Below, piece by piece: positions 24,877-44,608 of a DNA stretch of 64,000 nucleotides. Numbering within the stretch: the first letter of the stretch is position 1; each line of letters starts with the position of its first letter. This DNA comes from Lepidodermella squamata (lineage: Eukaryota; Animalia; Gastrotricha): contig JBLDXI010000001.1 in assembly GCA_047495785.1 (NCBI GenBank), positions 806,001 to 870,000 on the forward strand, written 5' to 3'. A program made the position numbers and the translations under genes. The notes under the pieces were generated by a model, which saw only the letters and a list, made by a program, of their open reading frames with translations, did no database searches and was not told where the DNA came from.

Positions 24877-25335
24877 ATGGGGCAATTTGCGACAAGCAAC
24901 GCAACTACAACATGTGTTGGAGTATTTTTGATACTCATCGGAATCGCTATGATAGCCGCGCTGGCTGTAGCTATATACTACATCGCCGCCGAATCGACGT
25001 ACCAAGCGCCGAATAACAAAGATGACTCTTCGTCATCATCAGCATCACGGAACTTAATCATCACCGACAACACGGGTGCTGAGACTACAACAGGCTTCTA
25101 CCAAAACTTCCAATACTCGACCGAAGTTGGCGGCATTATTGTCCGCGAACCTGTCAAGAATCAAACGCAGTGGAATCTGTTAGTAGGCGACCGCGAGAAT
25201 GAAAAATTCGAGATTTTAAAGCCGCAAAACGAAGACCCGATAACTACAGTTCGATCGATTGTGACCTCCAGACGCCTCGGACAAGTCTACGTCACCCGGC
25301 CGAAGAATCGCAGGCGAAACTTCAAGCGAAACTAG
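24877..25335 (+). CDS. MGxF-TM array paralogue 1
   Basis: MGQFATSNATTTCVG + TM helix; carries the VGG..W.L..G.R..E.FEI module. Confidence 0.85.
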   Translation: MGQFATSNATTTCVGVFLILIGIAMIAALAVAIYYIAAESTYQAPNNKDDSSSSSASRNLIITDNTGAETTTGFYQNFQYSTEVGGIIVREPVKNQTQWNLLVGDRENEKFEILKPQNEDPITTVRSIVTSRRLGQVYVTRPKNRRRNFKRN

Positions 25336-25419
25336 AGACTTTGTGATGTCACCGATTAATAAATACGCATTATTTATTTTTTATTTTTATTTTTTTTTTA
25401 GATTTTAACTTATGAACTT

Positions 25420-25899
25420 ATGGGCCAGTTTCCTACCAGTAATTCGGCAACAACATGCGTTGGATTTTGGATTATTCTCATTACGATATTTTCGCTAATT
25501 GCGCTTGGAGTTTTCGCGTATTTCATGATCACGCAGTATCCACATCCGCAAACAGGGCCAACAACTACATCGACGACGCCAACTCCTCCGCAGGATTCTT
25601 CCACTAAATCGGCACAGGCTTTGGTCCTTACGCAGCAGCAGAACGATGCTCAAATTCCGTCGACGGCCAGCGGCAAATCGCAACCTGTCACTGATCAGCG
25701 AGCGGGAACGACGGCTGTTCTGATGCGGAAAAAATGGACGACTTTGAGGAGGAAAGTCTCAAGTACCAAGACCTCGACATCCACGACTACAACGCCGCAA
25801 ACAACGACAACTTCCGAAGAAATTCCGACCCCGCAATGGGTGTCGTATGATGAACTATTCCGAAATCCTGAAAATGCTCGCATTCCATGGTCGTACTAG
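25420..25899 (+). CDS. MGxF-TM array paralogue 2
   Basis: MGQFPTSNSATTCVG + TM + Thr-rich tail. Confidence 0.85.
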   Translation: MGQFPTSNSATTCVGFWIILITIFSLIALGVFAYFMITQYPHPQTGPTTTSTTPTPPQDSSTKSAQALVLTQQQNDAQIPSTASGKSQPVTDQRAGTTAVLMRKKWTTLRRKVSSTKTSTSTTTTPQTTTTSEEIPTPQWVSYDELFRNPENARIPWSY

Positions 25900-26692
25900 G
25901 CCGAAAGCTTGACAATAGCAGTCACTTTTCTACCCGAAATTCCATCAAATATATGCTTTATTTTCTCACAGCTCTTGTAGTTTTTATCAAATTTCGACGC
26001 ATTTCGACTCTTTTTCTGATATAAATCATCTTTCAAATAATAAAATTGCGCATATTTTCTTATGATTCACAACGTTTTTGAGAGAGGTGGTGAAAAAGCT
26101 GTCGATTTTTATAAGCCGAGGCTGAATTGTTCCAGAAAACCTATCAAAGCTGGAAGCTATCAAAAAACCAAAAATCAGAAATACAACCCGCTAGGTTTAT
26201 TGACCCTGATACGTCGATCGATAAGCACCGCATCGGGAAAAATAAGGCAAACAGACACATCATGGGAGAATATCATAGAAACTGGAAATGTTCCGTTTCA
26301 GCCCTCGATTTTTTCGTTTTTATAGTGCAATTTAAAAAATTAGGTTTTACGGTATAAATTAATCATGGAAATCTGAGGCGACAGAAGTTTGCTCTCCGAA
26401 TACCTTCCAATAATTAATTACCTCATCTAGTAGCCCTTTTTCATCTCTTGTAGCGCGTGTATCCAGCCGCGCCGGCTCGTTGCGCTCCAGGATTTTTCTT
26501 CCCTGCTGCGATAATGAAACTGCGCGCAAAAGAAAAAGAGCGTTACGATAACGAACACGCAAACTGCGGCGACAAAAACACAGAGTTATATCCACAAACA
26601 CCTAGCGTGATGTTGCACCACAAAAGTTAACACGGGAAACAAGGCACGGCAGACAATTTTTTCCAACTCAGGTTTTATATATACCGTAGAAC

Positions 26693-27037
26693 ATGGGTAA
26701 ATTTGCGACGACCGACCCGACGACCAACGGCATCGGGGCCTTCAGTATTGTGCTAGGCATCATTCTAATTATCGGTGTCATCGTGCTCATCGTTGTACTT
26801 CAGCCGCTAGCAATGCCGGCTACGACAACCGATTCGCCGCCGACGACAACAACAGCCAGAACAACAACAGCGTTTGTTTCATCGGCGACCAAGTTGAAAT
26901 TTAGCGATTACGAGGGAGCTGTAGCCAGCGTGAAAACCGCCGATCCGAGGCAATTCGTTTCGGTAGAAACAACCGTTCCACCTGCCACTCCCCCGCCTGT
27001 TACACGCCTGGCTTTTCCAAGACTTAGTAGGAGATAA
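26693..27037 (+). CDS. MGxF-TM array paralogue 3
   Basis: MGKFATTDPTTNGIG + TM + Thr/Pro tail. Confidence 0.85.
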   Translation: MGKFATTDPTTNGIGAFSIVLGIILIIGVIVLIVVLQPLAMPATTTDSPPTTTTARTTTAFVSSATKLKFSDYEGAVASVKTADPRQFVSVETTVPPATPPPVTRLAFPRLSRR

Positions 27038-28269
27038 AGCAGGAATTTTCGCTTTCTCAAGACTGCCTCTCCTTCTGCTTCATCTCATACCTAATATTTT
27101 CGACGGCGAAGAATTCTGAATAAAGAGCCATGTAAAATGTAAAAGCTTCTAAAGACTCTTATTTTATATCATGTTCGATGAAGTGTCGAGACGTTGAGAG
27201 GCTTGCGAGACATAATTTTTTAAGACAGCTTTGACACTTTCTACCATGGAAAATTGAACAATTTAAATGGTCTTTTCAGTTTTATTAGGCTTGGTCGTAA
27301 ATAATCTGGGCCGCGGCGTTGAATGCGATTAATTCATCTGTCAACTCGGAATTTTCTCAACACAGTATGAATGAAACGCAAACTTGATCCATTGTTATTG
27401 TTATGAGCGAGAAATTCAATGCGAATTTTTTTGAAAATATGTTGGCGATTATTTTTTGTCGCCTTAAACCTCCTTAAGTTATTCATTCTTTGTTGTAGTG
27501 TTCAATATTTTTTTCAAGCGCCAAAACACATCCGCACCCGTTTAATTAATTTTCACTAATTAATTGGTATTAATCATGCCCAGTCCACGATGGTGAGGCT
27601 CGAGGCATATTCCTAATAATTTTGACGCTGGTTCAACTTGCAAATTTTTTACCACCGACAGCCTCCACGAAATGTGTAAGTATTTTTCTACAATATCATG
27701 AAACCCTGCGAGAAGCTTTCGCGCTATTACGCACTCTGCGCTGACTATTCAGAGAATAAAAACGGCAAAAAATCAGATAAGCTTGGAGTTAGCGTTAGCT
27801 CTCATTAAATTTTCATTTCACGAGTCATTGATACTTTGACATGATCGGTGTTGAGTTCCGCAGTTAAATTCTAAACAAAGCCGGCATTAAAACGAACAAT
27901 GAGATAAACTGAATACCCGCTAATTGGGTGACAGTACGTCGCAAAAACTGCGCAGTTTTTCAACACACAGGATAAAAATTACGTTTGACCTTATCACAGG
28001 CGCACATTGTTATTTTGGCCGCGCGCTCGCATTGTTGACACGGCGCGATTCGCCATCATCAACTCTATGACCGCGGATTTGACGCGTCTCAAGTGAGCGC
28101 GCGGTTTTTACATAAAAATCCAGCAATAAAACAATAAAAAAGGCATCTTTAAAAAATTACCACGCCATAACATTGTCGAAAAACATTTTTAAACTTGAAG
28201 AGATAACCTTTATTTTAAAAAAATCGATATAATTGTTTTTTTCAGGTATAGATTTTATCGAGAGAGAAA

Positions 28270-28653
28270 ATGGGAGTTTTCTTAGTCGCTGGTAACTCTG
28301 GAAACAATATAGCGACCAATTGCATCGGTATTGCAATGATTATTATAGGAATTGTGGCTATAATCGGATTCATCGTTTTATTCATAATTATATGTGGAAT
28401 TCCTAAAATTGTTCAAACTGAGATACCATTAGAGGCAGCTACTCAAGCTCCAATGCCAGCGAGATTCATAGTCGATACCGCGGAAGCTAGTACAAAGGCG
28501 GTGACATTAGGCCCTGTTTATTTGGTAACAAATCCTAAACCGACCTCTGCTGCAAACAGCGATGACAGCCTGGCGAGTCGAAATTTTGTGCCTGAAAAAT
28601 CGGCGGATTCTCGTCAGCAAATCGTGGCTAAAAGTCGGCGGATGCAAGGCTGA
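28270..28653 (+). CDS. MGxF-TM array paralogue 4
   Basis: MGVFLVAGNSGNNIATNCIG + TM. Confidence 0.85.
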   Translation: MGVFLVAGNSGNNIATNCIGIAMIIIGIVAIIGFIVLFIIICGIPKIVQTEIPLEAATQAPMPARFIVDTAEASTKAVTLGPVYLVTNPKPTSAANSDDSLASRNFVPEKSADSRQQIVAKSRRMQG

Positions 28654-28959
28654 TAGAGGGAGAGGAAAAAAGCCGGCTTGTCACCTTAAACGATGACCTT
28701 GTTGATTGTTTACCTCATTTGATCTTTGTAATACGAAAACGTGATTACGCGCTTTGTAAACAGATTATTTTATTTACAATTATCCCGTGACCTAGAACTC
28801 CCGGCCCAAAATACACTCATCCTACCTCTCACAACCCGTGCTTGTCGATAATCTCGGCTGAGAATAACCTTTATTTTTGTACCCTTTTGTAATAATGTCC
28901 TAACGAGGTATAAAACTATGACTATGCGAATTTTTTTTAGATTGTTTTAGAGAAAAATA

Positions 28960-29379
28960 ATGGGACAATTTGCTTTGATTTCTAATGGCGATTCAACTGT
29001 GGATTCAGTTAACGGAATCGGCATTTTTATGATAGTCCTCGGAATTGTTTCACTCATCGGCATAATTGTTTGTGTTATCGTGATAACGATGATTCAACCG
29101 GTCAAATCTGACTCGGATGCCGCAAGCGATGTTAGCCCGAATAAACTCAACGAACCGGACCCCGGCGATCAGGCGACTACTCCAACATACATAGGCCGGG
29201 TTGCTACATCGACAGCGCTTTACGGCGGGACACTCAAGACCAGAATTGTAACGCCAGCATTGACTGACTACGACGTTATCACTGTTTCGACTCGCCGGCG
29301 GTCGGTTCGCAACAAAATTCGGCGCAAATCTCGCCACCATGAAACACCGTCGAAATCACGCCGGCGCCTGGATAGTTGA
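28960..29379 (+). CDS. MGxF-TM array paralogue 5
   Basis: MGQFALISNGDSTVDSVNGIG + TM; Arg-rich C-terminus. Confidence 0.85.
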   Translation: MGQFALISNGDSTVDSVNGIGIFMIVLGIVSLIGIIVCVIVITMIQPVKSDSDAASDVSPNKLNEPDPGDQATTPTYIGRVATSTALYGGTLKTRIVTPALTDYDVITVSTRRRSVRNKIRRKSRHHETPSKSRRRLDS

Positions 29380-29513
29380 AAAATCATCTCAAAATTTTGC
29401 ATCTCGCCTTTGCACATAATATTCAGGGTTTCATATCATTTCGTGCAATATCAATTAAAGACAGTTTTTGTTCATTTTATTTTCATTTAGATTTTATTTT
29501 CCGTATAGCAAAA

Positions 29514-30092
29514 ATGGGGCAGTTTTCGTTATATTCTGCTGGCGATTCTAACGTCGATTCAATCAATTGTATCGGAGTTATGCTGATACTAATTGGCATC
29601 GGCGCCATCGCTGCGCTGGTCGTGCTATTCGTTTACCTTGGCATGACGCCGAAACCAGTGCCAAACCGAGACTCGCCCGATACAGCGCCGACTACGGAAG
29701 ATCCGCGGTTGAACAGCGACAGGGGCGGTACAACGAAGAGCATCTATTCGGAATACGACCAGTCGATCCGCGTGGCTGGACTTCTGAGCCGTGACGGCCA
29801 GGACTGGCGCCTGCAGACTGGCAACCGCCGCGAGGAGGTGTTCGAAATTCAGCCTCCGCCATCGCCTGAGCCAACACCAGCTCCTCGCCCGTCGCGAACC
29901 ACACCAAGGGTTAGAACTAACGTTACTTCAGCCCCTAAAGCTCCAGCCCCTAAAGCCCCGCAATACAATAATGACGACTACTACGAGGACTATGAAGATT
30001 CTGCCCAGCCGCCGAAACCGGCTGCTGGCGTTGTGGCTGGCTTGGTTAAGGTGAATGCGCGCCGGCCGGCTGCCCGGAGAAGATTCAGGTGA
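29514..30092 (+). CDS. MGxF-TM array paralogue 6
   Basis: True start at internal Met 29514 (MGQFSLYSAGDSNVDSINCIG) + TM; carries the W-module. Confidence 0.85.
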   Translation: MGQFSLYSAGDSNVDSINCIGVMLILIGIGAIAALVVLFVYLGMTPKPVPNRDSPDTAPTTEDPRLNSDRGGTTKSIYSEYDQSIRVAGLLSRDGQDWRLQTGNRREEVFEIQPPPSPEPTPAPRPSRTTPRVRTNVTSAPKAPAPKAPQYNNDDYYEDYEDSAQPPKPAAGVVAGLVKVNARRPAARRRFR

Positions 30093-31541
30093 ACAAAGTG
30101 ATGGAAAAAAATCAATAATTGCCAAAAACGCTGCCTCTTGACCAATCTCAGCAACTATTGTGTTGTAAATATTGTTTTATTTTACTGTTTTGCCATCCAT
30201 CTACATCTCGTTTGGTGATATGGGTTTATCAAAAATTATTGTGAATATCTTAAGTTTATTTACTGCTATTTATTGTGCGCTATCGTGCCGTAGCTAGTTT
30301 TAAATGAATCACTTTTACAATAAAAACCAGAAAATTTTCGGAATTTGTGAAGGATTCCTGTTTTCTTTCATTCCATTTCGAATTCATCATGTTGGATAGG
30401 AATCATTTTTCCAACAGAACACCAGGCAGCCTCAAAAGAGCATAAAGATCGGCTTAAATAAAGCTTTAACAGGTACCAAACAACTATTAATCGGTCTTCG
30501 AAACAAAATTTCTTAGATTAGGTAATGATCGATTTTTATTCAGCTTCCATCAAGAAATCAGTTTTTCACCGATCGAAGCGAACTTGAGTTGACGACTCTT
30601 TTTCTTTTTTTGCTGTGGAAGTGGTCCAAAAATTATTCAAAATTTCTGAAAATTTCCACTGACCCAAAATTTGCCCAGATCTGCAAATTCAAAATCCGTG
30701 ATTCGCAGAATTATTGTAATTAATTAATCAAAATTATTCTGAAACCCTTTATTTTGGCCAGAAAAACTCAAATGTCTTTGAAGGAAGTTCTTACCAGGAA
30801 AAACTGACGAAAGTAGGACTTAACCTTAGACAAAAAAGGTATCAACAGTTGACATTATTTGACAGATTTGGGATTTGAGACAAACAGGTCAAATTTGTTG
30901 AGAGCTTCAACGTCTCAAGCATTCAAGTGAAGAGGGAACAGCATATTTTATTCAAATTATTAATAATTAAAACCTTGATGTTTGAAACACTGATATAATA
31001 TAAGCTAATGAGAGGTGCAGGAAACGCGAGCCGTGGGTTGCCGTTATCTCACGCTGGCATTAGTAATGAAAGCCGCGCGTTTCATCCTGCCGCGTTGAAG
31101 ATATTTTTTGCGACCGCGCACGCATTCTTCGACAACAAAGAGAGCGCCGCAAATGCGCAAAAAGAACAGCTTGTGGGAACGCAGCACGAGAAGGCAGGCA
31201 GCAGCATGTTGGCACAGCGCCGCTGTTGGCGTTTTAGCCGCGGTGATGATGATTACACGGTTGGATAAAAAAATCTTGAACCTTTTTTATTGAAAAATAA
31301 AGGCAAATTTTTGAAACAAAAACAATAAACAACAAAAGAGCGTCGTTTGCCGTGACAAGTGAGCTTCGACGTTTATTATCCGCTATTAGTGAGCTCGGCC
31401 TCGGCAAATATTGCGTTTCAGAGGCGTTTTGCGGGTATCATCGAGAGCATCTAGCTGTAATTAATTCCGCGATATTATTACGCATTAAGAGATAACCAGA
31501 GGCTAAATAACCGACGACGTGTTAAAAAACAACAAAAAACA

Positions 31542-32258
31542 ATGGGAAAGTTTACGCCAAACGACTGCAACACAACATGTGCTGGTTACATCGTCATCAT
31601 CATCTCGGTCGTCTCGGCTGTTGGCATCGCGCTGATGGTCGCCTACATCTCGAAGGTGCCGATGCCGAAAGCGGGATCGGACGATAGCGACGACTCGGTT
31701 GTTACTGTCGCGATTACTACTACTACTACTAGGCCCCCTCCTCCACGCCCGCCTCCGACGACACTCAGAAACGTGGTGATGGACCCAACTCAAGCGCCTT
31801 ATGTCAATGTTTCAGCACCAGCGCCAGCTCCTGCACCTGGGACTATAGCTGGCTTGACACCTAACATAACGGGGCAATCTTCTGTTCCAGCAGCCTCGGT
31901 GCCGGTAAACCCACCTGTCCCCAGTTCCCCAGTTGCTGATCCGAGAAACATCCCAGCAGTACCTCAGCCAATTCCTGGACCTGCCCCGCTGCCTGGTCCG
32001 CAGCCTGGTCAAGATCTTGGCCCAATTCCAGGTCCGGGTCCCTTGCCAAACCAGCCCCCGGCTCGACCCCCGACGGGATCTATCGGCGGCCCTGGCACTC
32101 AGAACGAGATGGACCCTGATTACTACGCCGATTACGAGTCGTTAATGGCAGCGTTAAAACGACGAAATGAAGAGTTGGAAACAACGACTGTAGCTCGCCG
32201 GCTTCCGGTCAGGCGGCGTAAGACGACAACACAGTCCGTCTACTACGCTGCCTACTAG
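31542..32258 (+). CDS. MGxF-TM array paralogue 7 (Pro/Gly-rich)
   Basis: MGKFTPNDCNTTCAG + TM + long Pro-rich tail with an acidic Tyr patch (DYYADYE). Confidence 0.85.
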   Translation: MGKFTPNDCNTTCAGYIVIIISVVSAVGIALMVAYISKVPMPKAGSDDSDDSVVTVAITTTTTRPPPPRPPPTTLRNVVMDPTQAPYVNVSAPAPAPAPGTIAGLTPNITGQSSVPAASVPVNPPVPSSPVADPRNIPAVPQPIPGPAPLPGPQPGQDLGPIPGPGPLPNQPPARPPTGSIGGPGTQNEMDPDYYADYESLMAALKRRNEELETTTVARRLPVRRRKTTTQSVYYAAY

Positions 32259-32424
32259 AAACATATTTGAATCTCACTATTTTGTCCTAGCGATTTCATT
32301 GCTCAATTTCATTTTAACTCAGCTTTTGGGTTTCGAAAATTCGATAATCACATGTACTCATTTAAATAAAATCTTTAATTTGAATTTTTTTTAATATTTT
32401 TTTAGGGCTTTTATGAGGAAGTTG

Positions 32425-32763
32425 ATGGGGAAATTTCCGACAACTGACCACAACACATCCGGAACTGGTTACACGCTCATTGGACTTGGAATTTTAACTT
32501 TCATTTGCCTCATTGTCCTTATCGTTTATGTCGTGATAAATACCAGCCCTACCGCGACAGCTTCGCCCACTAAGGCGCCAAACAGCGATAAGGCATCGAA
32601 AAGCCTGAACGAAGCTCCGGCTCCTCCTGTGCCAAAAATGGACGAAACGCCGCCTCGACGCGTCAAAAAATTACCGGGTAGCGATTCCGGCAATAAGCTG
32701 CTCAGAGTCGTAAATATCAAACTTACTGGAAATGAAGCTATTTTAACTTTGGATGAAAGATGA
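32425..32763 (+). CDS. MGxF-TM array paralogue 8
   Basis: MGKFPTTDHNTSGTG + TM. Confidence 0.85.
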   Translation: MGKFPTTDHNTSGTGYTLIGLGILTFICLIVLIVYVVINTSPTATASPTKAPNSDKASKSLNEAPAPPVPKMDETPPRRVKKLPGSDSGNKLLRVVNIKLTGNEAILTLDER

Positions 32764-32919
32764 TTTTAGTATAATTTCTTAAAAAATCAATTTATTTTTG
32801 CTATAAATGTTACCTCGTCATTTATGCCCTACCAGCTTTCAGTCCCTTGTGCCCTGCAGTATTGTATATTAATTATTTTAAGGATGAATTTTATAAATTT
32901 GAATATTTAGACTTTTAGT

Positions 32920-33519
32920 ATGGGAAAATTTGCGACCGGCAATCTGACGCAAGATGGGATTGGTGGCTGCCAAATAGCCCTTGGCATAGTCGTAATCATT
33001 TTAATTATCGTTTTAATCGTCTTCACCGCCTTGATCCCACAACCGAATACTGCAACGACAACGGCTGCACCTCCTGCTACCACCGTGAAGCCAAAATCGC
33101 TAGCAGCACCAGCACCAGCACCAGCACCGGCCGCCGCACCGGCACCAACCTCATCCCAAGTCAGACCGGCTCCTCAAGCTGCCCCAGCTGAAAACCTGAA
33201 AGCTTACGGGGAGCTGCCTACGACGGCGCCCGTCATTCGAACACGATCGACAAAGAAAACGACCAAAAGCCATAAAACAACAACACTCGGCGATTATTAT
33301 GGTGAATTACTAATTTTTCAATGTTTTTTATATAATTTAGTCGACATTTTAGAAGATGACGAGAGTTACAACCCACCGCCGCCGCCTCCTAACCGTAAAG
33401 CTGTCGGTCGGCATCACCGCCACCATCATCATCATTTTATTAAAGAGCATAGAAATATGGCTCATGATGAAGAGTTGGATGACGATGCCTTATTCCCAGA
33501 ACTCAACCGCGCGCTCTAA
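32920..33519 (+). CDS. MGxF-TM array paralogue 9 (Ala-Pro repeats, His tract; probable 51-nt intron 33302-33352)
   Basis: MGKFATGNLTQDGIG + TM; in-frame AT-rich gtgaat..ttttag segment; RHHRHHHHH near the C-terminus. Confidence 0.85.
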   Translation: MGKFATGNLTQDGIGGCQIALGIVVIILIIVLIVFTALIPQPNTATTTAAPPATTVKPKSLAAPAPAPAPAAAPAPTSSQVRPAPQAAPAENLKAYGELPTTAPVIRTRSTKKTTKSHKTTTLGDYYGELLIFQCFLYNLVDILEDDESYNPPPPPPNRKAVGRHHRHHHHHFIKEHRNMAHDEELDDDALFPELNRAL

Positions 33520-33947: not shown

Positions 33948-34442
33948 ATGGCTGGCGATAGTGACTCGAAAGGTTGCGCCATAAGCGTCATATTAATCAT
34001 TATTTTGGTCACTTCAGCGGTTATAATTGGAGCTTCAGTTTTCTGCTGGATCGGACTATCCGCATCAAATTCTGGCTCGCCCGACAAAGAAGGAGTTTCC
34101 GTAGCGATAGACCACCAAGAACCCAAGGAACTAAAGACAATGTCAGTAACAACAACTTTACCAGCTGTCCTGGAAACAACGCAAATTCCGAATTCAACAA
34201 CAAAAAGTTTTCTAAATAGGAAGCGTTCTCATAGGGGCAGTCGTTTTAACAATCGAAAAGGGCCTGAAGAGCTCAACCCTAAGCCGAAAAAATATGCTGC
34301 CTATGTTCGCGCTCCACAGCCCGAAGATCCTCATTTCGGGTGGTTTCCGTTCAATCCATTCGTCGATCGATCCTATAATAATTCGACCGAGAAAACAACG
34401 AACTTTACAATCGATTTGAATGTCACGTCTACTTCTCCTTAG
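33948..34442 (+). CDS. Divergent array paralogue 10 (lacks MGxF)
   Basis: MAGDSDSKGCA + TM + Thr-rich tail with several N-x-S/T sequons. AGDS echoes paralogues 6 and 13. Confidence 0.7.
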   Translation: MAGDSDSKGCAISVILIIILVTSAVIIGASVFCWIGLSASNSGSPDKEGVSVAIDHQEPKELKTMSVTTTLPAVLETTQIPNSTTKSFLNRKRSHRGSRFNNRKGPEELNPKPKKYAAYVRAPQPEDPHFGWFPFNPFVDRSYNNSTEKTTNFTIDLNVTSTSP

Positions 34443-34711: not shown

Positions 34712-35107
34712 ATGGGACGCTTCTCCACCTCAAATTCGAGTACCAACTGCATCGGAGTTTTGAGCATCATTATAGGGGTGCTTGTCTTGGCTGGAATCGT
34801 CGTGCTATTCACAACTATCGGATTCCAATTCTGGAGACCAGGTGGGGTAACAACCGCAGCTCCTACTACAACAATTCAAGTTACGCGGAAATCAAAAACT
34901 AAAACGACTACAACAACAGCTGAAACGCTGAGCGATGTCTCTTATTCTTCTAATTCGACGAATTCCCGGCCTAGGGTAGTCAAACGGCTACTGAAGAATT
35001 CGATACTGCCCCTCGAAGCTTTCGGCCGATTGTTTCAATTGATGGACGCGGAAATCGACTCGGCTGAAAATATGACTGAAATCAGCCCGAGTCGTAATTC
35101 ATTTTGA
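34712..35107 (+). CDS. MGxF-TM array paralogue 11
   Basis: MGRFSTSNSSTNCIG + TM + Thr-rich tail. Confidence 0.85.
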   Translation: MGRFSTSNSSTNCIGVLSIIIGVLVLAGIVVLFTTIGFQFWRPGGVTTAAPTTTIQVTRKSKTKTTTTTAETLSDVSYSSNSTNSRPRVVKRLLKNSILPLEAFGRLFQLMDAEIDSAENMTEISPSRNSF

Positions 35108-35228
35108 CCAGCTTACGATTTATTATATAAGCACCACAGGTGTCTAAATAAAATGTTGCACAACTTTTTTTGTAATAATTACATTTTTTTCGGGAGAAAT
35201 ATGGTGCTGTAGTCGTTAGTAAGTGTTA

Positions 35229-37657
35229 TCATCTGCAACCTATTTGCTGCCAATGAGGTAATCCATTTGCAAGGCGATAGGCCTCCCACAGCTTCTCCTC
35301 CTCGGCGGTAGTCCATTCCAAGGCTTGGCTTTTACTGGAGACCAACGCCGATCCTGCGCCGTTGAGACTTGAGTATGCCAGCCGAGCATCCAGCGCCCGC
35401 ATGTCACACCAGCCTTGATAGTCTTTCACGAACCAGTCATGCTTCAATGCTTCAAATCATAGTGTAAGTATAATGGATCTGGTTAAAACCTTGGGACATA
35501 CCTTTCGCGGGTGAAAGCCTGTGACGCATGTTTATCTCCATTAGCCCTCTGACGATGTTACTAGCTTCCGCCGTGAGAGCACGCCACGGGTCCTCCGGAA
35601 ACGAGACAGGAATTTTTTGAAGATTTTGAACTGCTTCCTCGTCGTCGCTGTTGTAAGGAAATACGCCACTGAGACTCACAAATATTACGACACCAGTCTG
35701 GCGGGGGGACAAGGCTCAGTCACGGTTTTCGATAAAAATGTGTCTAGATTCAACTCACCGACCACGAATCGAGCTCTTTATTGAAAAGGGGAGCTTTGTT
35801 TAGAACTTCAGGCGGCAAATAAGCTGGCGTTCCGACTACTGACGCCCGAAATGATCGATCCCCAATTATTCGGGAATAGCCGAAATCTGCCAGCTTGACC
35901 AGAGGGTACTGGGTGTACTCCTCTCCTTAACAATGAACGTTTGAAAGATGGATGAAAACTCAATCGGAATTCCTACCTTTTTTCAAAGCTGGGTCGCCGA
36001 TGTTGAAACAGAGCAACACGTTTTCCGGCTTCAAATCACAATGCGCCATTTTGTGCGCGGTATGAAGATACTTTAGAGCTACCAGAATCTAACAGAAATT
36101 TTAAGGTGGACATAACCAATGATAATACTTGAATTATATACCTGTCTTGCGATGAATTTAGTTACCCGCTCCGTAAGACGGGTATTCGGGCTGTTGAGAA
36201 TGAATTCAAGCATATCGGTATCGGCCTTTTCCATAACAACGTAAATCTACTCTCAATCCACGTTAAAATGAATCAAATTGGTATATATTGGATAGCTAAC
36301 CTTTTCGACGGTATGCAAACAATCGATTAGTTTAGTTATTCCAGGGTGTTTAATTTCTTTCATGATTCGAATCTCACTTGCGATGAATTGATTTAGCGAC
36401 ATTTTATCTAACCGCTCCAAATGCTTTTTGTCGATCGCCTTAATTGCTACGTCCCCTTTCGCAGGCGGTTTCAAGGATGCAGCGTAAACGATACCGAACT
36501 GGCCCGAGCCCAAAATGCAGTCAGGATTGTCCATGTCAACGTCGTAGAGGCTGCGAATGTCAATATCCTGACTATTCGCAACAGGCAGGGCGAAACAGAG
36601 TTGCCGAATGGTGTTCATCCAACCGAGGCCGTAAGCCCGTCCTATACCTTTATTCAACTCGTTCCAGTCACTGGTTTTATCGAAAAAACTCGGATCTTGC
36701 CCTGCGTAGATGACTACCCGAGTTGTCCTGATTGCGAAGACGTGGGGATATTCTCCGGTTATACCCGCTACAGGAGGTGATGGGCTAGATCTTGATTCTG
36801 ATTTATCGCTTTTTGAAGCATTATAGGCCGTCTCCTTGTTCTCCTCAACAGCTATAATCGAATCCATGGGGATTTTCTGCAAAAATGAGGGTTCACTAAA
36901 TGAATTAGGAAAATTCCAAATTTTACCAAAGTTGGGTTCGAATCTGTTGGAGAATCGTAAAAAGCCAAGTCCTTCGCTGTAACTTTCCAAAAATGGAGCA
37001 GATTTTTCTAAATTAAGAGGAAATTCAGTTACAAATGACGTTTTTCCAACAACGTTTACTGGTTGAGTTTTGTCGGTTCGATAAGCTAACCAGCCCTCCC
37101 TTATGACCGCAGTTCGCCGGACCTTGATCGAGAGGCCAGGATGGATAGCTCTTAAAGGAACAGACGTAGTTAGATCCGGAAAAGTCGCCGATTCGCTGTT
37201 TTTCATAAGAGATGACGCTTCTTTCAGTAACTGATCGTTGCTGCCTGAATTAGGCAAAATTTGGTGGCTAACACTAGATGCCATGCCTCCCCTGAGCCGG
37301 GATTCACATTGGCTCGTTGCCAGTTTGTTTACACAACGCCGATGAATGATCAACCCGCAAAACCGACATTTCGCTCCCTGTCGAATCTGTTCGATTTCAA
37401 ATTTAACAAAGCTTAACAGGTAATTCATTTGTTTCGAGGTGAAACAAATCGGGAAATGGGCGCGAGAGTGAGGTCGCCGAAAGTTCTGCACCTAGCTAAT
37501 TAAGGCTAATTTCGCACAAACTCACAATTCCATAGATTAGTTCGTTGTCCAACTTGCACCATGTCGGTTTCTTCAGGGTCACGACACCGAAATCGTGAAA
37601 GAACTCGCCCCCTAGCTTATTATTGTGATTCGTTGATTCATCATCCGAATGAGACAT
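35229..37657 (-). CDS. Protein kinase D-like Ser/Thr kinase (single C1, PH, kinase), multi-exon
   Basis: C1 [14 protein letters not shown]...[16 protein letters not shown]; [10 protein letters not shown]...[15 protein letters not shown]; kinase [63 protein letters not shown]. These are PKD-family signatures. Confidence 0.88.
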
Positions 37658-38569
37658 AGTAACAAAAGGCGGCGGATTCACTGTTAAAAAATTGTCTGAA
37701 TTAAACAACAGAGGTGATATATATCTGTGCTGTAATGAAGTCCATCAGGAACTAACCATAGAAAAAAGCATGGCTGTAATTAATAGACTGGTTATCAGTT
37801 ATCCTACTGCCGCCCGTTGTAGCATTATTTGTAGTATTTGCGATTCGCGTTTTACGACTGCTTGCTATATGAATAAACATAGTAGTACGGTGATAAAGCT
37901 CAGCTGTAATTTACACGGCAACAACAACTGCTCGCTATTTCGTCACCGTCATGCCATGATGAAAGCTGATTTATACGCCGCCCTATTAGCAGCTTCACAG
38001 CGCAGTGCAAACACTGGCCGAGATTTATATTCACTGCGCATGTGTGTTATTTAGTTGTCAATTTTTAATAAATTTCGTATCGGGGGAAGAAATTACATCC
38101 GCCGGTAGTCGTGAGCGCACGAAACGGAAAGCACGATTTAACGCGCTCTGATGCGTTATATTTATACACTTCTTTGGCTTTCATCTCACTTTTGATCAAT
38201 CGTCATGAGATACTAGAATAAAAACGCTGATGAAAACAATTTGAAACAACCTGAATTTTTTTTCAGCAAACCAGCTTTTTACACGTACATTTTACTCACA
38301 CAGGTAAACAGCGGAAAGGAGCGTGCGCCGTGAAAGTATAGCTGCCGAAGAATGTTTTTGTGGTGTCTACAATTTCGGCGCTTGTTTTTGCTCTTAAGAT
38401 ATTATTAGTTTGTTTTCAGAGTATAATGTTTACGGTGCGCTTTATACTCAGCAGAACAAAACACGCTGGACATTGGCCAAATTTTTACGCTTCCCATCCC
38501 CTTATCCATGCTGCTTGAGGTCGGTAACAACTAACTCTGCATCACTCTTCATCGTTTTTTTGCTCATAA

Positions 38570-38965
38570 ATGGGCGTTTTTACAACGTCTAACAATGACG
38601 TGAATGCCATCGGTTACTTGATGATCATTCTCGGCATTTTGTTCATCGCCGGCATTGTTGTAGTGATTGTCTTTACAGTGATCAACACTGACCCTAAGAA
38701 TATTTCAACGACAACCGAAGCGCCGACTACGACTGAGGCGGCCAGTACCGAAGTAGACACGTTACCGCCCCCTTCGACTCGCGAAGTTGCCGTTGAAAAC
38801 GTCCGGCCCCCACCCAGGACTCGAGGAGGAGCAGCTGGAGCTGGTAGCCGGAAATGGGTCCGCCTGCCAGCCTTCGAGTTACGTTACATCAACGGCGAGT
38901 GGGTGCCTGTTTTCACGAATTCGACAACGACAGAGAGCAGCGATCAGGTCGCCCCGGCTGCTTAA
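38570..38965 (+). CDS. MGxF-TM array paralogue 12
   Basis: MGVFTTSNNDVNAIG + TM; VRLPAFELRYINGEWVPVF module. Confidence 0.85.
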   Translation: MGVFTTSNNDVNAIGYLMIILGILFIAGIVVVIVFTVINTDPKNISTTTEAPTTTEAASTEVDTLPPPSTREVAVENVRPPPRTRGGAAGAGSRKWVRLPAFELRYINGEWVPVFTNSTTTESSDQVAPAA

Positions 38966-39331
38966 TGCGATGATTTTATCTACTGCGTCTAACTTAATCC
39001 AAAGAACTAACCTGCCATGCTGCACCATAAATTTTTCATGGAACACCGAAGATACAAAAATTTCAATTTATATAATAAATTCAAACGTTGTGGAAGAAAG
39101 GTTTTTCAATCAAAGGTCTTGCGCGATGTACGTGGATGTCATATCCATGTCCCAAAATGAACATTAATTCTACCTTTTGGGACGAATAAAAACAAATTAA
39201 TTACTTCGATTGCGAAAATGATAAAAGGCATTTGAGGCTCAGGGGAGTTTAGATGATAATATCCACGAAAAGCTGATACATTTTCGCTAAAGGAGTCCCG
39301 GAATCCTGCCAACCAGGTGCTAATATTTCTA

Positions 39332-39697
39332 CAGTGCGTCCAGCAGGAGTTTCGAACCTATGTTTTAATTTTAGGAACCTTTTGTAGGAAATGCCCCCAT
39401 TTTTTTAAATTGAACTAACCAAAAAAAACGTTCATCTTTAATGCGCGATTTAACCGAAGAAATAACAATTTTACCCGGAATACCCGATGGTAACTGGTTC
39501 GTTAAGGTTCTGTTTTCACCTGGTTGGATCAAATTTCTTCGGGGTTTTCAATCCTTAATCATTAACAAGTGACATTTCTTAATTACTATTTTTAAGAATT
39601 TCTCTAAACATTTTCTGGCCATGAGATTTTAGGTTTCTGAACCCTTTTTCCATGTATTTTATTTGCTTGCGGCTTGCGTTACTTAGGGGACACGCTG
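39332..39697. mobile_element. Tc1/mariner-type MITE, copy A
   Basis: TA|CAGTGCGTCC ... GGACACGCTG|TA. Shares internal blocks (cccgatggtaactggttcg, cctggttggatcaaatttcttcgg, ttttctggccatgagat) with 41721-42095. Confidence 0.75.
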
Positions 39698-40324
39698 TAC
39701 TTATCGGGAGTTGGGGCTTCAAATCAACAGGTTCCCTTCTTTTTGAATGAAGTTCTCGTGACATGCCATGTCCGAAAACCATTCATTGCGAACAAGTTAA
39801 ACTTTTACGGTTATCGCCCAATAATTTTTGCATCCTCCCCTCGCAGATTTTTGAAACAGATAGCCTATGCCGTTGACTGGCTAGAGACGTCTTCAAGACT
39901 TGAGTGCGTTTTGTGCTTTGTTCTACCGCGGAATATTTGCGTGATAATAAAAGCGCTGTTTTCGCTCTATTCTCTGCGAGCAGGATCGCGCTCTATTAAC
40001 ACGTCTATAGTCGCCGCAAATTACCAGAAATAAACATGCAGAACAAAAGCATAACTTGATAATAATTTTTTCATTTGGAAATGGCCTGATTTTCAAGTTG
40101 TTATAAGGCTAACCCCAAGAACGGAGAGGTTCAACCGATGCTCGTGCCACCCTACACAGTTGAAAATGAATATTCATTTTGCCCTCTAAACAGTTTTTCT
40201 ATACTTACAAGCGCATAAACCTATTCAGTATGCAGAACGGATTAAAAGAAAACTTACCAGCAATTAGGACTTATTTTTCGTTTTTTTTTGCAATTTAGTG
40301 TATTTTTTGACGATTTTTTTTGCT

Positions 40325-40750
40325 ATGGCTCTGTATTCGGCAGGAGATTCGAATGTTGACAAAATCAACTGTATGGCTGCCTTACTCATCATTTTCGGCA
40401 TCGCAATGCTTGGTGGCTTGATAGCTTTCACAATAATAATGGTTCAGGATTACGCCCGACCCAAGGCTATTCCCTACGTGGAAGTAACAACCACAGAAGC
40501 TCCAATGTTTAGGACGACAACAACAAAGGATCCTTTCCTAGAATACCACAAAGCTGCTGGAGTTGTCGGGATTTTGAACAAAAATGACGCTGATCAGTGG
40601 AAGCTGCAAGTTGGTAGCCGACCCGGCGAGGAGTTCGATATTGCTGATCCGCCGCCGCCTAGAAAAAATCAGACAATGAAGCATGCGCGAAAGCGACCAT
40701 TCCTCAGAAAAGCTCTTATTGAAACGACAGTTTCACCGACGAAATCATAG
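40325..40750 (+). CDS. Array paralogue 13 (N-terminally shortened)
   Basis: MALYSAGDSNVDKINC matches paralogue 6 minus MGQF; TM; W-module QWKLQVGSRPGEEFDI. Confidence 0.85.
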   Translation: MALYSAGDSNVDKINCMAALLIIFGIAMLGGLIAFTIIMVQDYARPKAIPYVEVTTTEAPMFRTTTTKDPFLEYHKAAGVVGILNKNDADQWKLQVGSRPGEEFDIADPPPPRKNQTMKHARKRPFLRKALIETTVSPTKS

Positions 40751-41145
40751 ATAATTTGTTTTGGATAATATAAAATTGGACTCTTCAATGAACTTATATC
40801 AGAAAATAAGCAATAAAGCTTTTTTCGAAATTTTTCTTAATTTTCGATTTTTTTCGGAATATTTTCCCCCCCGCTGTGGTTCTTGTGCGACCCGTGTTTT
40901 CTCGCAAAGCTCTACAAGAGATTGGGATGAAAACAACCCGCTTTAACGTACTCAATGCAAAATAAACAAGCGCGGCTGTAAAAACTTGCAAAATAATATG
41001 TTTCTGTTACAGTACCATCAACAAGCGCGCCGGTCATTTGCAGAATACGGGAGATTGTTTGAAGGTAAATAATAGCGACAGGAAATGCTTTAACCTATTT
41101 AATTGCGTGATATACTTTTCTATAGCTGAGATCACCCTCTTGAAA

Positions 41146-41610
41146 ATGGGAGTCTTCACAACTTCGAACAGCAGCACGAACTGCATTGGTTACTTAAGCA
41201 TCATCATCGGTACGATTGTATTAATAGGCATCGTCGTTCTGATTGTAGCGACAGTTATCACCACAATCGACCCTCCAGAAGCAACCACAGAGGCGCCAAC
41301 GACGAAAGCTCCGAAAAAGAGGAAAACGACAACGTTGGAACCGGATGTAACAACTGCTGTTAGCGACGCTTCAAATAACACAGCCGATTCCGACGCAGGT
41401 TCTTCATCTAATCGTACAGTTGTTAATGGGGCGAAGCGAGCAGTAGGGCCTGGCATTCGAATGGTACGTTTACCGCCGTTCCAGATGAAGCGAATCAACG
41501 GCGAATGGGTTCCTGTTTTCATCGGGGTTGTAGATGATGATGAAATCATCGAAGAGAATGCCAATTCTACTAATACCAATTCAACGATGCCTAAAATCAC
41601 TGAGAACTGA
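41146..41610 (+). CDS. MGxF-TM array paralogue 14
   Basis: MGVFTTSNSSTNCIG + TM; VRLPPFQMKRINGEWVPVF; probable 5'-UTR intron 41065-41125. Confidence 0.85.
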   Translation: MGVFTTSNSSTNCIGYLSIIIGTIVLIGIVVLIVATVITTIDPPEATTEAPTTKAPKKRKTTTLEPDVTTAVSDASNNTADSDAGSSSNRTVVNGAKRAVGPGIRMVRLPPFQMKRINGEWVPVFIGVVDDDEIIEENANSTNTNSTMPKITEN

Positions 41611-41720
41611 CACTCATTTTATATAAATATTCCCTCAAATTATATAGATAATAATTTTAATAAAACGACTATATATATTTAGAAGGAGTGCTTTGTGGAT
41701 TTTGAAGATTACGGAAAATA

Positions 41721-42095
41721 CAGCGCGTCCCACAAGTTGCGAAACTATTTTGTAATTTCGATAAATTTTTAAGGAAAATTAACCTAATTTTTTGAAATTA
41801 ATCCCACGGGGGAATCTTCCATCCATTATCCACTTCACCAAAGAAACAAAAAATCTTCCGAAGAAAACACGGAAAGACCCGATGGTAGCTGGTTCGCTTT
41901 TTACCTGGTTGGAACAAATTTCTTCGGATTTTTGAATCCCATTCACAAGAGACATACTTGGCTATTATTCTCATGGCATTTTAGATTTTTCTAAGATTTT
42001 TCTGGCCATGAGATATGACTTCCCCATCTCATTTTAGATTTTCTGATCCCTTTTTCGTAATTTCTATATGTTTGCGTTACTTATGGGACACGCTG
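41721..42095. mobile_element. Tc1/mariner-type MITE, copy B
   Basis: TA|CAGCGCGTCCCACAAGT ... ACTTATGGGACACGCTG|TA imperfect terminal inverted repeats; homologous to 39332-39697. Confidence 0.8.
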
Positions 42096-42372
42096 TATAT
42101 GTAGTTGAATTAACGCTTCAAATGACGAGTTTAGGTTGAGACCCGAATGTCGTAGTCCCAACATGAAATTCTATTGAAATTTCCGAAAAATGCTTTTAGC
42201 ACATAATAAATTTTCGTATTATGGTACCGCTAATTTCCCACAAAATAATTTCCCCTTCCGCTAAAATAACATGGAATTTAAAAAGCTGTTCGAGATCGCA
42301 CATATTCGACAGTAAAAAATGGGTCGCAATTTATGGTGGAAGAGCATTATTTTCCTGAAGACTTCGGTAGAA

Positions 42373-42750
42373 ATGGGCTCTTTTCCTACGGGTGACGTTA
42401 CCACCAATTTTTCGGCTTATTTAATGATCGTTTTAGGGGCGATTTTCATCGCTGGAATAGCTGTTTGTTGCGTTGCTCTCATCTGGCACTTCCCGCCCGG
42501 CTTTGTGGTACCAACTACCGCTCAGCCAACTGAGGAGCCGTGTACAACTACGGAACAGACTACAGTCACTTTATGGTGGCCATCGACAAAATTTTACAAG
42601 AAATATTTCGGCGGACATTTTCACGTTCCAGTGTATTACGACAGCCTCGAACCAAGGCCTAGAAACCGACATTCTCAAATGTTAGAATTAATTACAATGA
42701 GCCATGCGAGCAGGAATGGGAGACTTGATGTTTTAGTTTCAGATGAATGA
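42373..42750 (+). CDS. MGxF-TM array paralogue 15
   Basis: MGSFPTGDVTTNFSAY + TM ending VCCVALIWHFPPG. Confidence 0.85.
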   Translation: MGSFPTGDVTTNFSAYLMIVLGAIFIAGIAVCCVALIWHFPPGFVVPTTAQPTEEPCTTTEQTTVTLWWPSTKFYKKYFGGHFHVPVYYDSLEPRPRNRHSQMLELITMSHASRNGRLDVLVSDE

Positions 42751-42884
42751 GGGTTATTTAAATACCTTCAACACACCTTAAGATGAGGCAATAAAATAAC
42801 TTGTTGGACATGTTTATAGCGAGGTAATTTGTGTGAGCGAAATTGCTTTGTCGCAAAACTAGAACTTCTCGCCAATTGCAAGTT

Positions 42885-43418
42885 ATGGGGGTTTTTGCGA
42901 CTAGTGACGACAACACTAATATTGTCGGTTACGTTTTAATAGTTCTCGGAGTGATTTTTCTGATCGGAATCATCGTTTGTTGTGTCGCTCTTGGGCTACA
43001 TTTCCCGCCTGGGTATGATGCTACGACAACCGCAGCGCCATCAACCACGACTACAGAAATGGCAAGCACGACAACTATATCTTCAACTACTACAACAATA
43101 AATAGATTCTTCTTGTGGAGCAGCACAACAACGAAACGGTTTTTCCTGCCTCGAGTTTTCCGGCAACCATCAGCAGTTGTTTTTCACTTCAACGCCGATG
43201 ACACATTTGCCGTGATGAGCCAGCTTAACGATTCTGAAGAGCAGCAGCAGAAAGGCGTTCAAATCAAGAAAGTTGTAGAATTCATCCATCCGACTCGGGA
43301 AACTGACGCAGAGCGGCAGCTTCAAAAACAAAAGGAAGCGCAAATCAAACATGTCGTGGACGCGTTATATCCTGCTTTTGATAATAGCGATGAGTTGCCT
43401 CCACCGTTGTTAGAATAG
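42885..43418 (+). CDS. MGxF-TM array paralogue 16
   Basis: MGVFATSDDNTNIVGY + TM ending VCCVALGLHFPPG. Confidence 0.85.
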   Translation: MGVFATSDDNTNIVGYVLIVLGVIFLIGIIVCCVALGLHFPPGYDATTTAAPSTTTTEMASTTTISSTTTTINRFFLWSSTTTKRFFLPRVFRQPSAVVFHFNADDTFAVMSQLNDSEEQQQKGVQIKKVVEFIHPTRETDAERQLQKQKEAQIKHVVDALYPAFDNSDELPPPLLE

Positions 43419-43534
43419 CTGGCACTTTCAAAGAATAAAATGTGCGTTGATAGAGTAATTTTTCTCACGCTGATTACAGCCGAAAATTCAGTGAAATTTT
43501 TTCACACATGCGTTTATTTTCAATTTATGAAAAA

Positions 43535-43879
43535 ATGGGAAATTTTCCGACGAACGATGACTCGACCAATTTTTCAGGCTATGTTAATATAATTTTCGGC
43601 ATTTTAGCCATTTTCGGGATAGCTGGTGTCATCGTGGCGATGGCTATTCATTTTTCGCCCGACAGATTAGTCACCCAGCAGCCTATGGAAACAACAACTA
43701 CCGAGGATCCAATTAAAACCCTTCCGACTACAACGGTCTTCAGCTGGCCACCACCGGAGAAACCTGGCTCAGACATCCCTCCACCCTTTTTTCTTACCGT
43801 CGCAACCACCGCGCCGCAGCTAAATATTAACGAAATGCCGAGAAACCGGCGACGATGGCTATCTGTTATCCAATCTTGA
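43535..43879 (+). CDS. MGxF-TM array paralogue 17
   Basis: MGNFPTNDDSTNFSGY + TM ending AIHFSP. Confidence 0.85.
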   Translation: MGNFPTNDDSTNFSGYVNIIFGILAIFGIAGVIVAMAIHFSPDRLVTQQPMETTTTEDPIKTLPTTTVFSWPPPEKPGSDIPPPFFLTVATTAPQLNINEMPRNRRRWLSVIQS

Positions 43880-44194
43880 CGACAGCAACTCAAGATACAT
43901 ACTTTTATTTAAACGCTGCGGTCATCAAAATTAATTCAAAATGTTCTACGAAATTGATTCTTTTGTTTGCAATAATAAATTTTTATATATAAGTTAAGAG
44001 GATTAATTTTGCCTCATTTATGTCGCTCTCTTTTTTGTGAAAAAACCTTATGCATAGGTACTTATGACCCAATATATTTTACATTGTGATTTTTCAAGTG
44101 TTTGTCACGGGTTGAGATTTAAACAGCGTAAAGATGACAAATTTCAAGGCTAAACATTTCTACTATTTCGTTTCTTGAAAATTGAACCGATGTG

Positions 44195-44608
44195 ATGGGA
44201 GCTTTTCCGACATCGAATGACGCCGCAAATATTTCGGCATATATCGTCATCGTCATCGGCATTTTGTGTATAATTGGTATAATTGTTGTTTGTGTAGCGG
44301 TCGGCATTCACACGTCACCGCAGTATCTCAATAGTACATCTACAACAGAGGGAACAACTACGGCGGCGGCGACCACTTGGGCACCAGCACCGGCAGCAGC
44401 TACTACGACAGCAGGTCGGCGTGCGAAAAAAGTCGAAAAAATTCGCCAGCATCACTTTTTCAAAATCAGCGATAATGAATGGGCTGTGATTGCGATTTCT
44501 GAAGACACTACGCCGGGAGACAAATTATTCAGCGATCTCGAATCTTCAACTTCAACCAACGGAAACGTCATAGTGCCGGACGATGGCAGTTATGAATACT
44601 ACGAATAG
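44195..44608 (+). CDS. MGxF-TM array paralogue 18
   Basis: MGAFPTSNDAANISAY + TM ending GIHTSP; AATAAA after the stop. Confidence 0.85.
   Translation: MGAFPTSNDAANISAYIVIVIGILCIIGIIVVCVAVGIHTSPQYLNSTSTTEGTTTAAATTWAPAPAAATTTAGRRAKKVEKIRQHHFFKISDNEWAVIAISEDTTPGDKLFSDLESSTSTNGNVIVPDDGSYEYYE

Follow-up and report, generated by a model that had tools for sequence, protein, structure and literature searches.

A tandem family of small membrane proteins

The window analysed here is a stretch of 64,000 nucleotides (64 kb) from contig JBLDXI010000001.1 of Lepidodermella squamata, and it carries a cluster of co-oriented genes at 24877-44608. Judging from their sequences, 17 clear genes and one doubtful one form a real tandem family of small, single-pass membrane proteins. 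The best explanation is a taxonomically restricted family, anciently duplicated in tandem, whose genes have few or no introns. Our favoured reading of the products, to which we give somewhat less than an even chance, is that of signal-anchored type II proteins that would be N-myristoylated on Gly2 in most paralogues and would expose a variable tail in the lumen or at the cell exterior.

According to the list of open reading frames (ORFs), 18 ORFs in this interval are all on the + strand, and each encodes a short polar start segment followed by a long hydrophobic stretch. When all six frames of the whole window were scanned for M-G-x-F with 50 or more codons after it, 16 matches were obtained, all on the + strand within 24877-44608. 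Each of these 16 ORFs has a 19-residue window with a Kyte-Doolittle value of 2.6-3.5 inside its first 50 residues, and 12 of them have Thr at position 6. The alignment (A2) recovered the helix pattern I/V14-G15-xxx-I19-xx-G22-x5-G28-xx-V31: among the 13 ungapped members, I19 is found in all 13, G15, G22 and V31 in 11 each and G28 in nine. Hence, the scan and the alignment reproduced what a first-pass annotation had described, namely 18 co-oriented genes, 16 MG-x-F starts, 12 occurrences of Thr6 and their consensus. The lengths that it gave as about 110-240 amino acids (aa) become 112-238 aa when proteins are counted from the conserved ATG.

A profile hidden Markov model (HMM) was built from the first ~48 residues of 17 genes of the same alignment. 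These 17 genes score 51-76 bits, whereas the best unrelated six-frame segment of the window reaches 5.8 bits. Therefore, the family is sharply delimited and its signal is far above chance. No extra or decayed copy was detected by this search in the gaps of the array or in the rest of the window. The one gene of these 17 without an MG-x-F start, gene 40325, begins with M-A-L-Y and lacks Gly2, yet it scores 55.2 bits on the profile. The assignment of all 18 genes to one family holds for these 17 but less well for gene 33948, which starts with MAGDS. The N-terminal profile misses it, and phmmer in a 22-sequence database found only a marginal resemblance to other members (E 0.006-0.02). Although it resembles them in array position and architecture, its status as an 18th member is doubtful.

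Relatives of the family

No Pfam-A family was matched at threshold by any of the 18 window genes or by two of the relatives described below. Five members gave sub-threshold matches to New_glue (PF21827), with 24.8, 23.6, 17.1, 16.5 and 15.3 bits for a gathering cut-off of 31. The PDB profile search returned nothing significant, its best match (E 0.12, residues 11-64) being the anchor and stalk of aminopeptidase N. Word-indexed homologue searches were blank, both with the full-length family alignment, for which Thr-run words had probably swamped the search, and with one member poor in low-complexity sequence. When the N-terminal profile was run exhaustively against 1.84 billion representative proteins, exactly three matched (E 1.4e-9 to 1.6e-8), all of them unannotated ENA metagenome proteins that align from residue 1 to about residue 46. 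The first-pass annotation had recognised no known family, and none of these four kinds of search yielded a characterised match.

The three relatives start with M-G-[K/S/E]-[F/W]-x-T-[S/G]-[N/D]-x-T-x-N-C-[I/V]-G-Y and keep G15, I19, S22 and G28. They are encoded in tandem on the same strand of four nearly identical eukaryotic contigs with 37% GC. This related cluster also includes two divergent genes that encode M-G-start, single-helix proteins (L003, 2605-2901 and 3662-4450), so that all five clustered genes start with M-G. The second of these, a 262-aa gene, has a QW block, an acidic Tyr cluster and A-x-RRRR in the same order as the QWRL block, acidic Tyr cluster and A-RRR(R) of gene 29514. 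No further members were found downstream on the related contig. A 25-residue fragment, G-K-F-P-T-S...T-T-T-C, is encoded at L005 8137-8211 on the + strand with a weak profile score (E 0.09) and may be a remnant of another family copy.

Besides the family itself, no synteny was found between the window and the related contigs. Scanning JGI metagenome contigs with a 5-sequence alignment gave 29 stretches matching the pattern, none of which was confirmed, and two members looked up exactly in public assemblies had no record. According to these searches, the family is present in at least two species and nowhere among the annotated proteins searched.

Age and selection

Over the first 38 codons of the 13 ungapped members, mean pS is 0.79, i.e. 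saturated, versus a mean pN of 0.42. Gly2, Phe4, Ile19 and the helix glycines persist despite this saturation of synonymous sites, and the paralogues are therefore old and under selection. Codon use at these residues is diverse: all four Gly codons occur at Gly2, both Phe codons at Phe4 and three Ile codons at Ile19. The use of all four codons at Gly2 and the M-G start of all five genes of the related locus suggest that selection acts on the residue itself.

These data leave very little room for chance ORFs or a decaying repeat. The window proteins are missing from all the collections searched, as non-genes would be. However, the 18 ORFs are intact over 112-238 codons, residues are conserved while synonymous sites are saturated and the family is kept in a second species. 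Furthermore, the copies share no DNA-level repeat apart from Thr-codon runs, and poly(A)-signal-like and acceptor-like sequences are found where they would be expected. A non-functional origin is effectively refuted by the profile, the search for relatives and the codon analysis, and we consider it hardly tenable.

Architecture of the proteins

The N-terminal segment comprises 8-18 residues according to the automatic helix boundary, or 12-18 residues up to the conserved Gly15. It carries at most one positive charge and up to two negative ones. The hydrophobic stretch that follows is 20-27 residues long in all members. For the product of gene 29514, AlphaFold2 run on a four-sequence alignment predicted a single helix at residues 12-43 (pLDDT ~84) and a low-confidence hairpin at residues 90-101 on the QW block, the rest being disordered (mean pLDDT 54.6). 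Whichever of the membrane models considered here applies, the conserved Gly/Ser positions of the helix, together with Ile19, argue that it makes a specific contact with another helix, either its own copy or that of a partner.

A juxtamembrane Cys had been proposed as a further feature of the N-terminal side. It is indeed located N-terminal of the helix in eight of the 17 profile members (nine if Cys17 of gene 32920 is counted), but in several others a Cys lies at the far end; genes 28270, 28960, 42373, 42885 and 44195 have Cys at the C-terminal helix end. Near the start, at position 8-12, an N-x-S/T sequon is encoded by 10 of the 18 genes of the window and by two of the five related genes.

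Beyond the helix, conservation drops: in pairwise comparisons the heads are on average 41% identical and the tails 24%, compared with 22 +/- 5% for shuffled tails. Tails that reach only the shuffled baseline are unalignable on average. The picture of a conserved N-terminal and helix module joined to fast-diverging tails, in real genes for single-pass membrane proteins, is supported. The view of the tails as mostly unalignable has to be qualified for two sub-families. Sub-family A (24877, 29514 and 40325) shares a block of about 45 residues ending in QW-x-L-x-x-G...F-E/D-I/V, and sub-family B (38570 and 41146) shares V-R-L-P-x-F...I-N-G-E-W-V-P-V-F, the RINGEWVPVF block. Acidic Tyr clusters recur in genes 29514, 31542, 32920 and 44195.

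Overall, the tails contain 12.8% Thr, 11.4% Pro and 0.1% Cys. In the window species, the first 30 residues past the helix are richer still in Thr (22%) and Pro (14%), with 11.5% Ala and 8.5% Ser. At least three K/R within five residues are found in 17 of the 18 tails, mostly near the C-terminus. Thus, the Thr/Pro richness and the basic clusters noted at first were both recovered, but the sequons noted with them are at chance level in the tails. A reading of the basic clusters as furin-type R-x-K/R-R sites was rejected as a general feature, few clusters fitting this motif.

The hydrophobic stretch is best read as an uncleaved signal anchor, since it seems too long and too specifically conserved for a signal peptide that is discarded. 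Were it instead an unusually long cleaved signal peptide, the products would be small secreted Thr/Pro-rich peptides of the glue, mucin or matrix type, perhaps processed at their basic clusters. The presence of such clusters in nearly all tails, the frequent Pro a few residues past the hydrophobic stretch and the sub-threshold New_glue matches in five members would fit this. However, these matches cover only the hydrophobic and Thr-run composition, and few of the clusters have the R-x-K/R-R form. Moreover, an h-region of 20-27 residues is about twice the usual length and the n-region of 12-18 residues is without positive charge. The maintenance of G15, I19, G22, G28 and V31 across saturated paralogues and across species would also be unexpected in a discarded segment. 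We consider cleavage quite improbable.

Proposed lipidation and membrane topology

According to the type II reading that we favour, the helix would insert with its N-terminus inside and its C-terminus outside. The initiator Met would be removed and Gly2 N-myristoylated in most paralogues, and the lipid would hold the short N-terminus at the cytosolic leaflet. Association of the helix with itself or with one shared partner would be driven by its small-residue positions, while the variable tail would face the lumen or the cell exterior. In the window species, this tail would begin with a mucin-like Thr/Pro/Ala stalk, probably O-glycosylated. The beta-hairpin block, the acidic Tyr clusters and the polybasic clusters would then give each paralogue a different surface.

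Several observations are in agreement with this scheme. Of the 18 window genes, 16 have Gly2 directly behind the initiator Met, as have all five genes of the related cluster, and a polar linker precedes the helix. The charge difference between flanks (C minus N) is below zero in 16 of the 23 window and related proteins, as expected for an internal N-terminus, but only if a free amino terminus is counted. Furthermore, myristoylation and type II insertion have been found to coexist experimentally in fusions of Lunapark TM1 (PMC3817238). Stbd1 is described as an N-myristoylated transmembrane protein of the endoplasmic reticulum (ER; PMC5358331), and references within PMC3817238 place a myristate in the membrane-binding N-terminal domain of NADH-cytochrome b5 reductase.

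Other observations weigh against it, first of all concerning myristoylation. The proposed agreement with the myristoylation consensus is seen at Gly2 and at Thr6 (12 of the 16 MG-x-F genes), but only eight of the 18 window genes and two of the five relatives fit the strict PROSITE PS00008-type pattern, which allows S/T/A/G/C/N alone as the sixth residue and bars charged, aromatic and Pro residues from position 3. Five window genes carry K/R as their third residue, of which Lys3 is tolerated in ARF6, and in four genes the sixth residue is V, L or P. Conservation is stronger at Phe4 than at Thr6, and we know of no requirement of N-myristoyltransferase for Phe at position 4. The two array genes that lack Gly2 keep intact ORFs, and in-frame ATGs upstream in three genes (32425, 42373 and 43535) could bury this residue.

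Type II topology is also less well marked than had been proposed. With an acylated N-terminus, the charge difference averages only -0.04, both flanks being neutral to acidic. The membrane-adjacent Cys is on the N-terminal side in some paralogues and on the C-terminal side in several others, and the frequent sequons at position 8-12 would make sense on the lumenal side. The tails have 21 N-x-S/T sequons versus 17.0 +/- 3.7 in shuffles (p = 0.18), which means that sequons are present there but not enriched. In addition, the Thr/Pro stalk is absent from the related species. Lastly, an N-terminus that is short and uncharged tends to be translocated when a long, very hydrophobic anchor follows it (PMC2139883).

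This last tendency would favour a type III arrangement, with the N-terminus outside and the C-terminus inside. The proteins would then have a tiny N-terminal ectodomain, possibly N-glycosylated or recognised by a partner, and a cytoplasmic disordered tail acting as an adaptor or regulator like those of LAT or KCNE/FXYD; its polybasic clusters would attach to the inner leaflet, its Tyr-acidic motifs would have a role in signalling or sorting, and Gly2 would not be myristoylated. Their N-terminal segment is short, almost devoid of positive charge and often net negative, and their helix is long and very hydrophobic, features that favour translocation of the N-terminus (PMC2139883).

The N-terminal sequons and the Cys residues at the C-terminal helix end of the five genes named above would find a place in a type III protein. 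So would the scarcity of Cys in the tails, as usual in cytosolic disordered regions, and the conservation across species of polybasic and acidic Tyr clusters but not of the Thr-rich stalk. However, no positive cluster is found just past the helix, where the first 15 residues are net acidic, unlike those of typical N-out anchors. A sequon located 4-9 residues from the membrane is also too close for efficient glycosylation, given the geometry of oligosaccharyltransferase. Stretches of Thr/Pro/Ala such as TTEAPTT, when adjacent to the membrane, are a typical feature of O-glycosylated ectodomains. Moreover, Gly2 is invariant in 16 window genes and five related genes, whereas the rest of the putative ectodomain is poorly conserved save for the first residues and the helix-adjacent Cys; an N-terminal modification explains this constancy better. 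A type III topology thus appears possible, though rather doubtful.

Another scheme would keep the myristate but place the tail in the cytosol. The proteins would be anchored in an organelle (ER, mitochondrial outer membrane or lipid droplets) by a monotopic hairpin or by post-translational insertion, as are ANKRD22, NADH-cytochrome b5 reductase and the stable signal peptide (SSP) of arenaviruses. The described myristoylated membrane-anchored proteins are mostly organelle residents (PMC3817238, PMC8478909, PMC5358331; SSP reviews PMC3497046, PMC4217180). Disordered tails without Cys and with polybasic clusters would be suited to this location. Nevertheless, hairpins usually need a break, and the predicted helix is straight over 20-27 residues without a central Pro or a Gly-Pro turn. 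The mucin-like composition of the stalk favours lumenal exposure, and among tandemly expanded families hypervariable tails are more usual in proteins that are secreted or exposed at the surface. We regard an organelle anchor as unlikely.

The type II reading can also be extended. The MG-x-F start and the patterned helix might together constitute a dual-anchor assembly module (myristate plus transmembrane helix). By forming oligomers or by docking on a single common partner, this module would present a repertoire of glycosylated, hypervariable tails at the surface of the animal or in its gametes. The family would then be a previously unknown, clade-specific variable coat of an under-sampled lineage whose diversity arises by tandem duplication and is driven by pathogens, predators or mating. 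We offer this only as a speculation with a small chance of being right. The coat, cuticle, egg-envelope or adhesive function suggested in the first-pass annotation is likewise pure conjecture.

Comparison with known systems

On present sequence comparisons, the family belongs to none of the systems with which we compared it. Like Lunapark, Stbd1 and NADH-cytochrome b5 reductase, most of its members have an M-G-x-x-x-S/T start and a hydrophobic membrane segment downstream. However, those are single genes encoding folded domains on the cytosolic or lumenal side with organelle functions, whereas this is a tandem family of 17-18 copies with disordered variable tails and an extra Phe4, and there is no sequence similarity. 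The arenavirus SSP also has a myristoylated Gly2 followed by hydrophobic segments and is retained as a membrane subunit (PMC3497046, PMC4217180). Unlike the window proteins, it is a viral 58-residue peptide with two hydrophobic segments that is cut from a glycoprotein precursor; no search revealed homology, and the resemblance is one of principle only. Some New World arenavirus SSPs also begin with M-G-Q-F.

Small membrane mucins and the anchor and stalk of aminopeptidase N likewise combine a single helix with a Thr/Pro/Ala-rich stalk directly after it. Unlike ectoenzymes of the aminopeptidase N type, the family has no globular ectodomain and no significant match to them (the E of 0.12 given above), and its stalk is not kept in the related species. 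The Drosophila New_glue proteins are also small, tandem and fast-evolving, with a hydrophobic N-terminus followed by Thr runs. However, glue proteins have ordinary cleaved signal peptides and neither an MG-x-F start nor a patterned helix, and the match is one of composition only.

Nematode type II transmembrane cuticle collagens resemble the favoured scheme in that a short N-terminus stays in the cytosol, a signal anchor follows and the C-terminal region is extracellular; they also have basic processing sites and form large gene families (PMC11304992). In contrast to them, the window proteins have no Gly-X-Y repeats and no conserved Cys knots, and their basic clusters are mostly near the C-terminus rather than near the membrane. 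As for KCNE, FXYD and LAT-like proteins, they too have a single helix in which small residues are conserved, placed between a very short N-terminal segment and a disordered tail that bears short linear motifs, but their topology is N-out, the one we rank second here, and no Pfam match to them was obtained.

Hence, the family appears to be new and without described relatives, while its architecture is of a familiar general kind. If the type II reading is true, this would be, to our knowledge, the first large family in which N-myristoylation and a signal-anchor helix are conserved as one module; elsewhere, the two are on record together in just a handful of single proteins. It would also provide candidate membrane-bound mucin-like components of the nematode surface coat, whose specific mucins are still unidentified according to a review (PMC11304992). 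If the tails are cytosolic or the N-terminus is cleaved, the array would be no more than a usual expansion, within one lineage, of genes for small membrane or secreted proteins. Even if no function is assigned to it, the family is a clean taxonomically restricted one with position-specific conservation of a transmembrane helix, useful for the study of helix-helix recognition and of orphan-gene evolution.

Members of the array

All members are on the + strand and are numbered here by their order in the array. Member 1 (24877-25335, 152 aa, MGQFAT, 67.5 bits) has the QW-x-L...G...F-E-I tail of sub-family A and is followed by member 2 (25420-25899, 159 aa, MGQFPT, 66.6 bits) and member 3 (26693-27037, 114 aa, MGKFAT, 65.0 bits). 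The N-terminal segment is longer in member 4 (28270-28653, 127 aa, MGVFLV, 51.7 bits) and in member 5 (28960-29379, 139 aa, MGQFAL, 59.8 bits), the C-terminus of the latter being strongly basic. Member 6 (29514-30092) encodes 192 aa from the conserved ATG and starts with MGQFSL; the ORF list has it start at TTG 29376. Member 7 (31542-32258, 238 aa, MGKFTP, 62.6 bits) has a Pro-rich tail with an acidic Tyr cluster. Member 8 (32425-32763, 112 aa, MGKFPT) has an in-frame ATG four codons upstream, at 32413.

Member 9 (32920-33519, MGKFAT) encodes 199 aa if read through. Positions 33302-33340 of this gene (39 nt, 85% AT) run from GTGAA to TTTAG, and their removal joins D-Y-Y to an acidic stretch. 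This segment is probably an in-frame intron, in which case read-through adds 13 spurious residues. Introns were also considered near the 3' ends of 32425 and 34712 but rejected, the downstream frames not being coding-like.

Between members 9 and 11 lies the doubtful gene 33948 (33948-34442, 164 aa). Member 11 (34712-35107, 131 aa, MGRFST, 68.3 bits) precedes member 12 (38570-38965, 131 aa, MGVFTT, 69.5 bits), which has the RYINGEWVPVF tail motif of sub-family B. Member 13 (40325-40750, 141 aa) is the gene without Gly2 that carries the sub-family A tail motif, and member 14 (41146-41610, 154 aa, MGVFTT) carries that of sub-family B. Member 15 (42373-42750, 125 aa, MGSFPT) has an upstream in-frame ATG at 42319, with a possible splice acceptor between the two ATGs. 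The top profile score is that of member 16 (42885-43418, 177 aa, MGVFAT, 75.7 bits). Member 17 (43535-43879, 114 aa, MGNFPT, 72.8 bits) has an upstream in-frame ATG at 43508. Depending on the 5' end of the mRNA, the upstream ATGs of members 8, 15 and 17 could put residues before Gly2. The last gene, member 18 (44195-44608, 137 aa, MGAFPT, 69.2 bits), encodes an acidic, Tyr-rich C-terminus.

Six neighbouring pairs are separated by only 84-167 nt. The shortest spacer, between members 1 and 2 (25336-25419, + strand, 84 nt), includes an AATAAA 22 nt past the stop codon, then a run of T and, 18 nt upstream of the next ATG, a TTTTAG acceptor, and it looks like a nematode operon spacer. Comparable spacers of 117-167 nt follow members 5, 7, 8, 15 and 16. 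More generally, AATAAA-like signals are found 15-110 nt past most stops, and a T-rich stretch ending in AG is located 10-40 nt ahead of about 11 of the 18 start codons. The spacers and acceptor-like sequences, together with short introns and with a glutamine synthetase (described below) whose best matches include nematode enzymes, suggest that trans-splicing and operons of the nematode kind may exist in the host. Rfam and tRNA scans of the window found nothing, including no spliced-leader RNA gene.

Neighbouring genes and other elements of the window

The array is interrupted by a gene resembling protein kinase D on the - strand (35232-37744), in which Pfam recognises a fragment of a C1 domain and the start of a kinase domain. 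Its introns are about 45-55 nt long and have ends of the GT...TTAG type. A non-coding element of about 400 bp is found twice (~39340-39760 and ~41730-42160, ~75% identity), downstream of the closest paralogues 38570 and 41146. It is probably either a remnant of segmental duplication or a shared regulatory element.

A second tandem family is located upstream on the - strand (17224-23747), where about five ORFs encode Cys-rich proteins. One of them (23358-23747) has a clear signal peptide, and three proteins of this family scanned against Pfam gave no match. Another ORF of the - strand (2348-3661, 437 aa) encodes a protein with Cys in its N-terminal region, a long middle part rich in Ser/Thr/Pro and a hydrophobic segment toward the C-terminus, without any Pfam match. 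On the other side of the array, three long ORFs of the + strand (59982-63618) encode proteins of 314, 434 and 222 aa, also without a Pfam match, the last of which ends in an acidic Ser-rich region. They are preceded by two divergent glutamine synthetase genes in tandem on the - strand (57107-59591). The best database identity of these is 51%, reached equally with nematodes, molluscs and arthropods, which points to a poorly sampled metazoan lineage.

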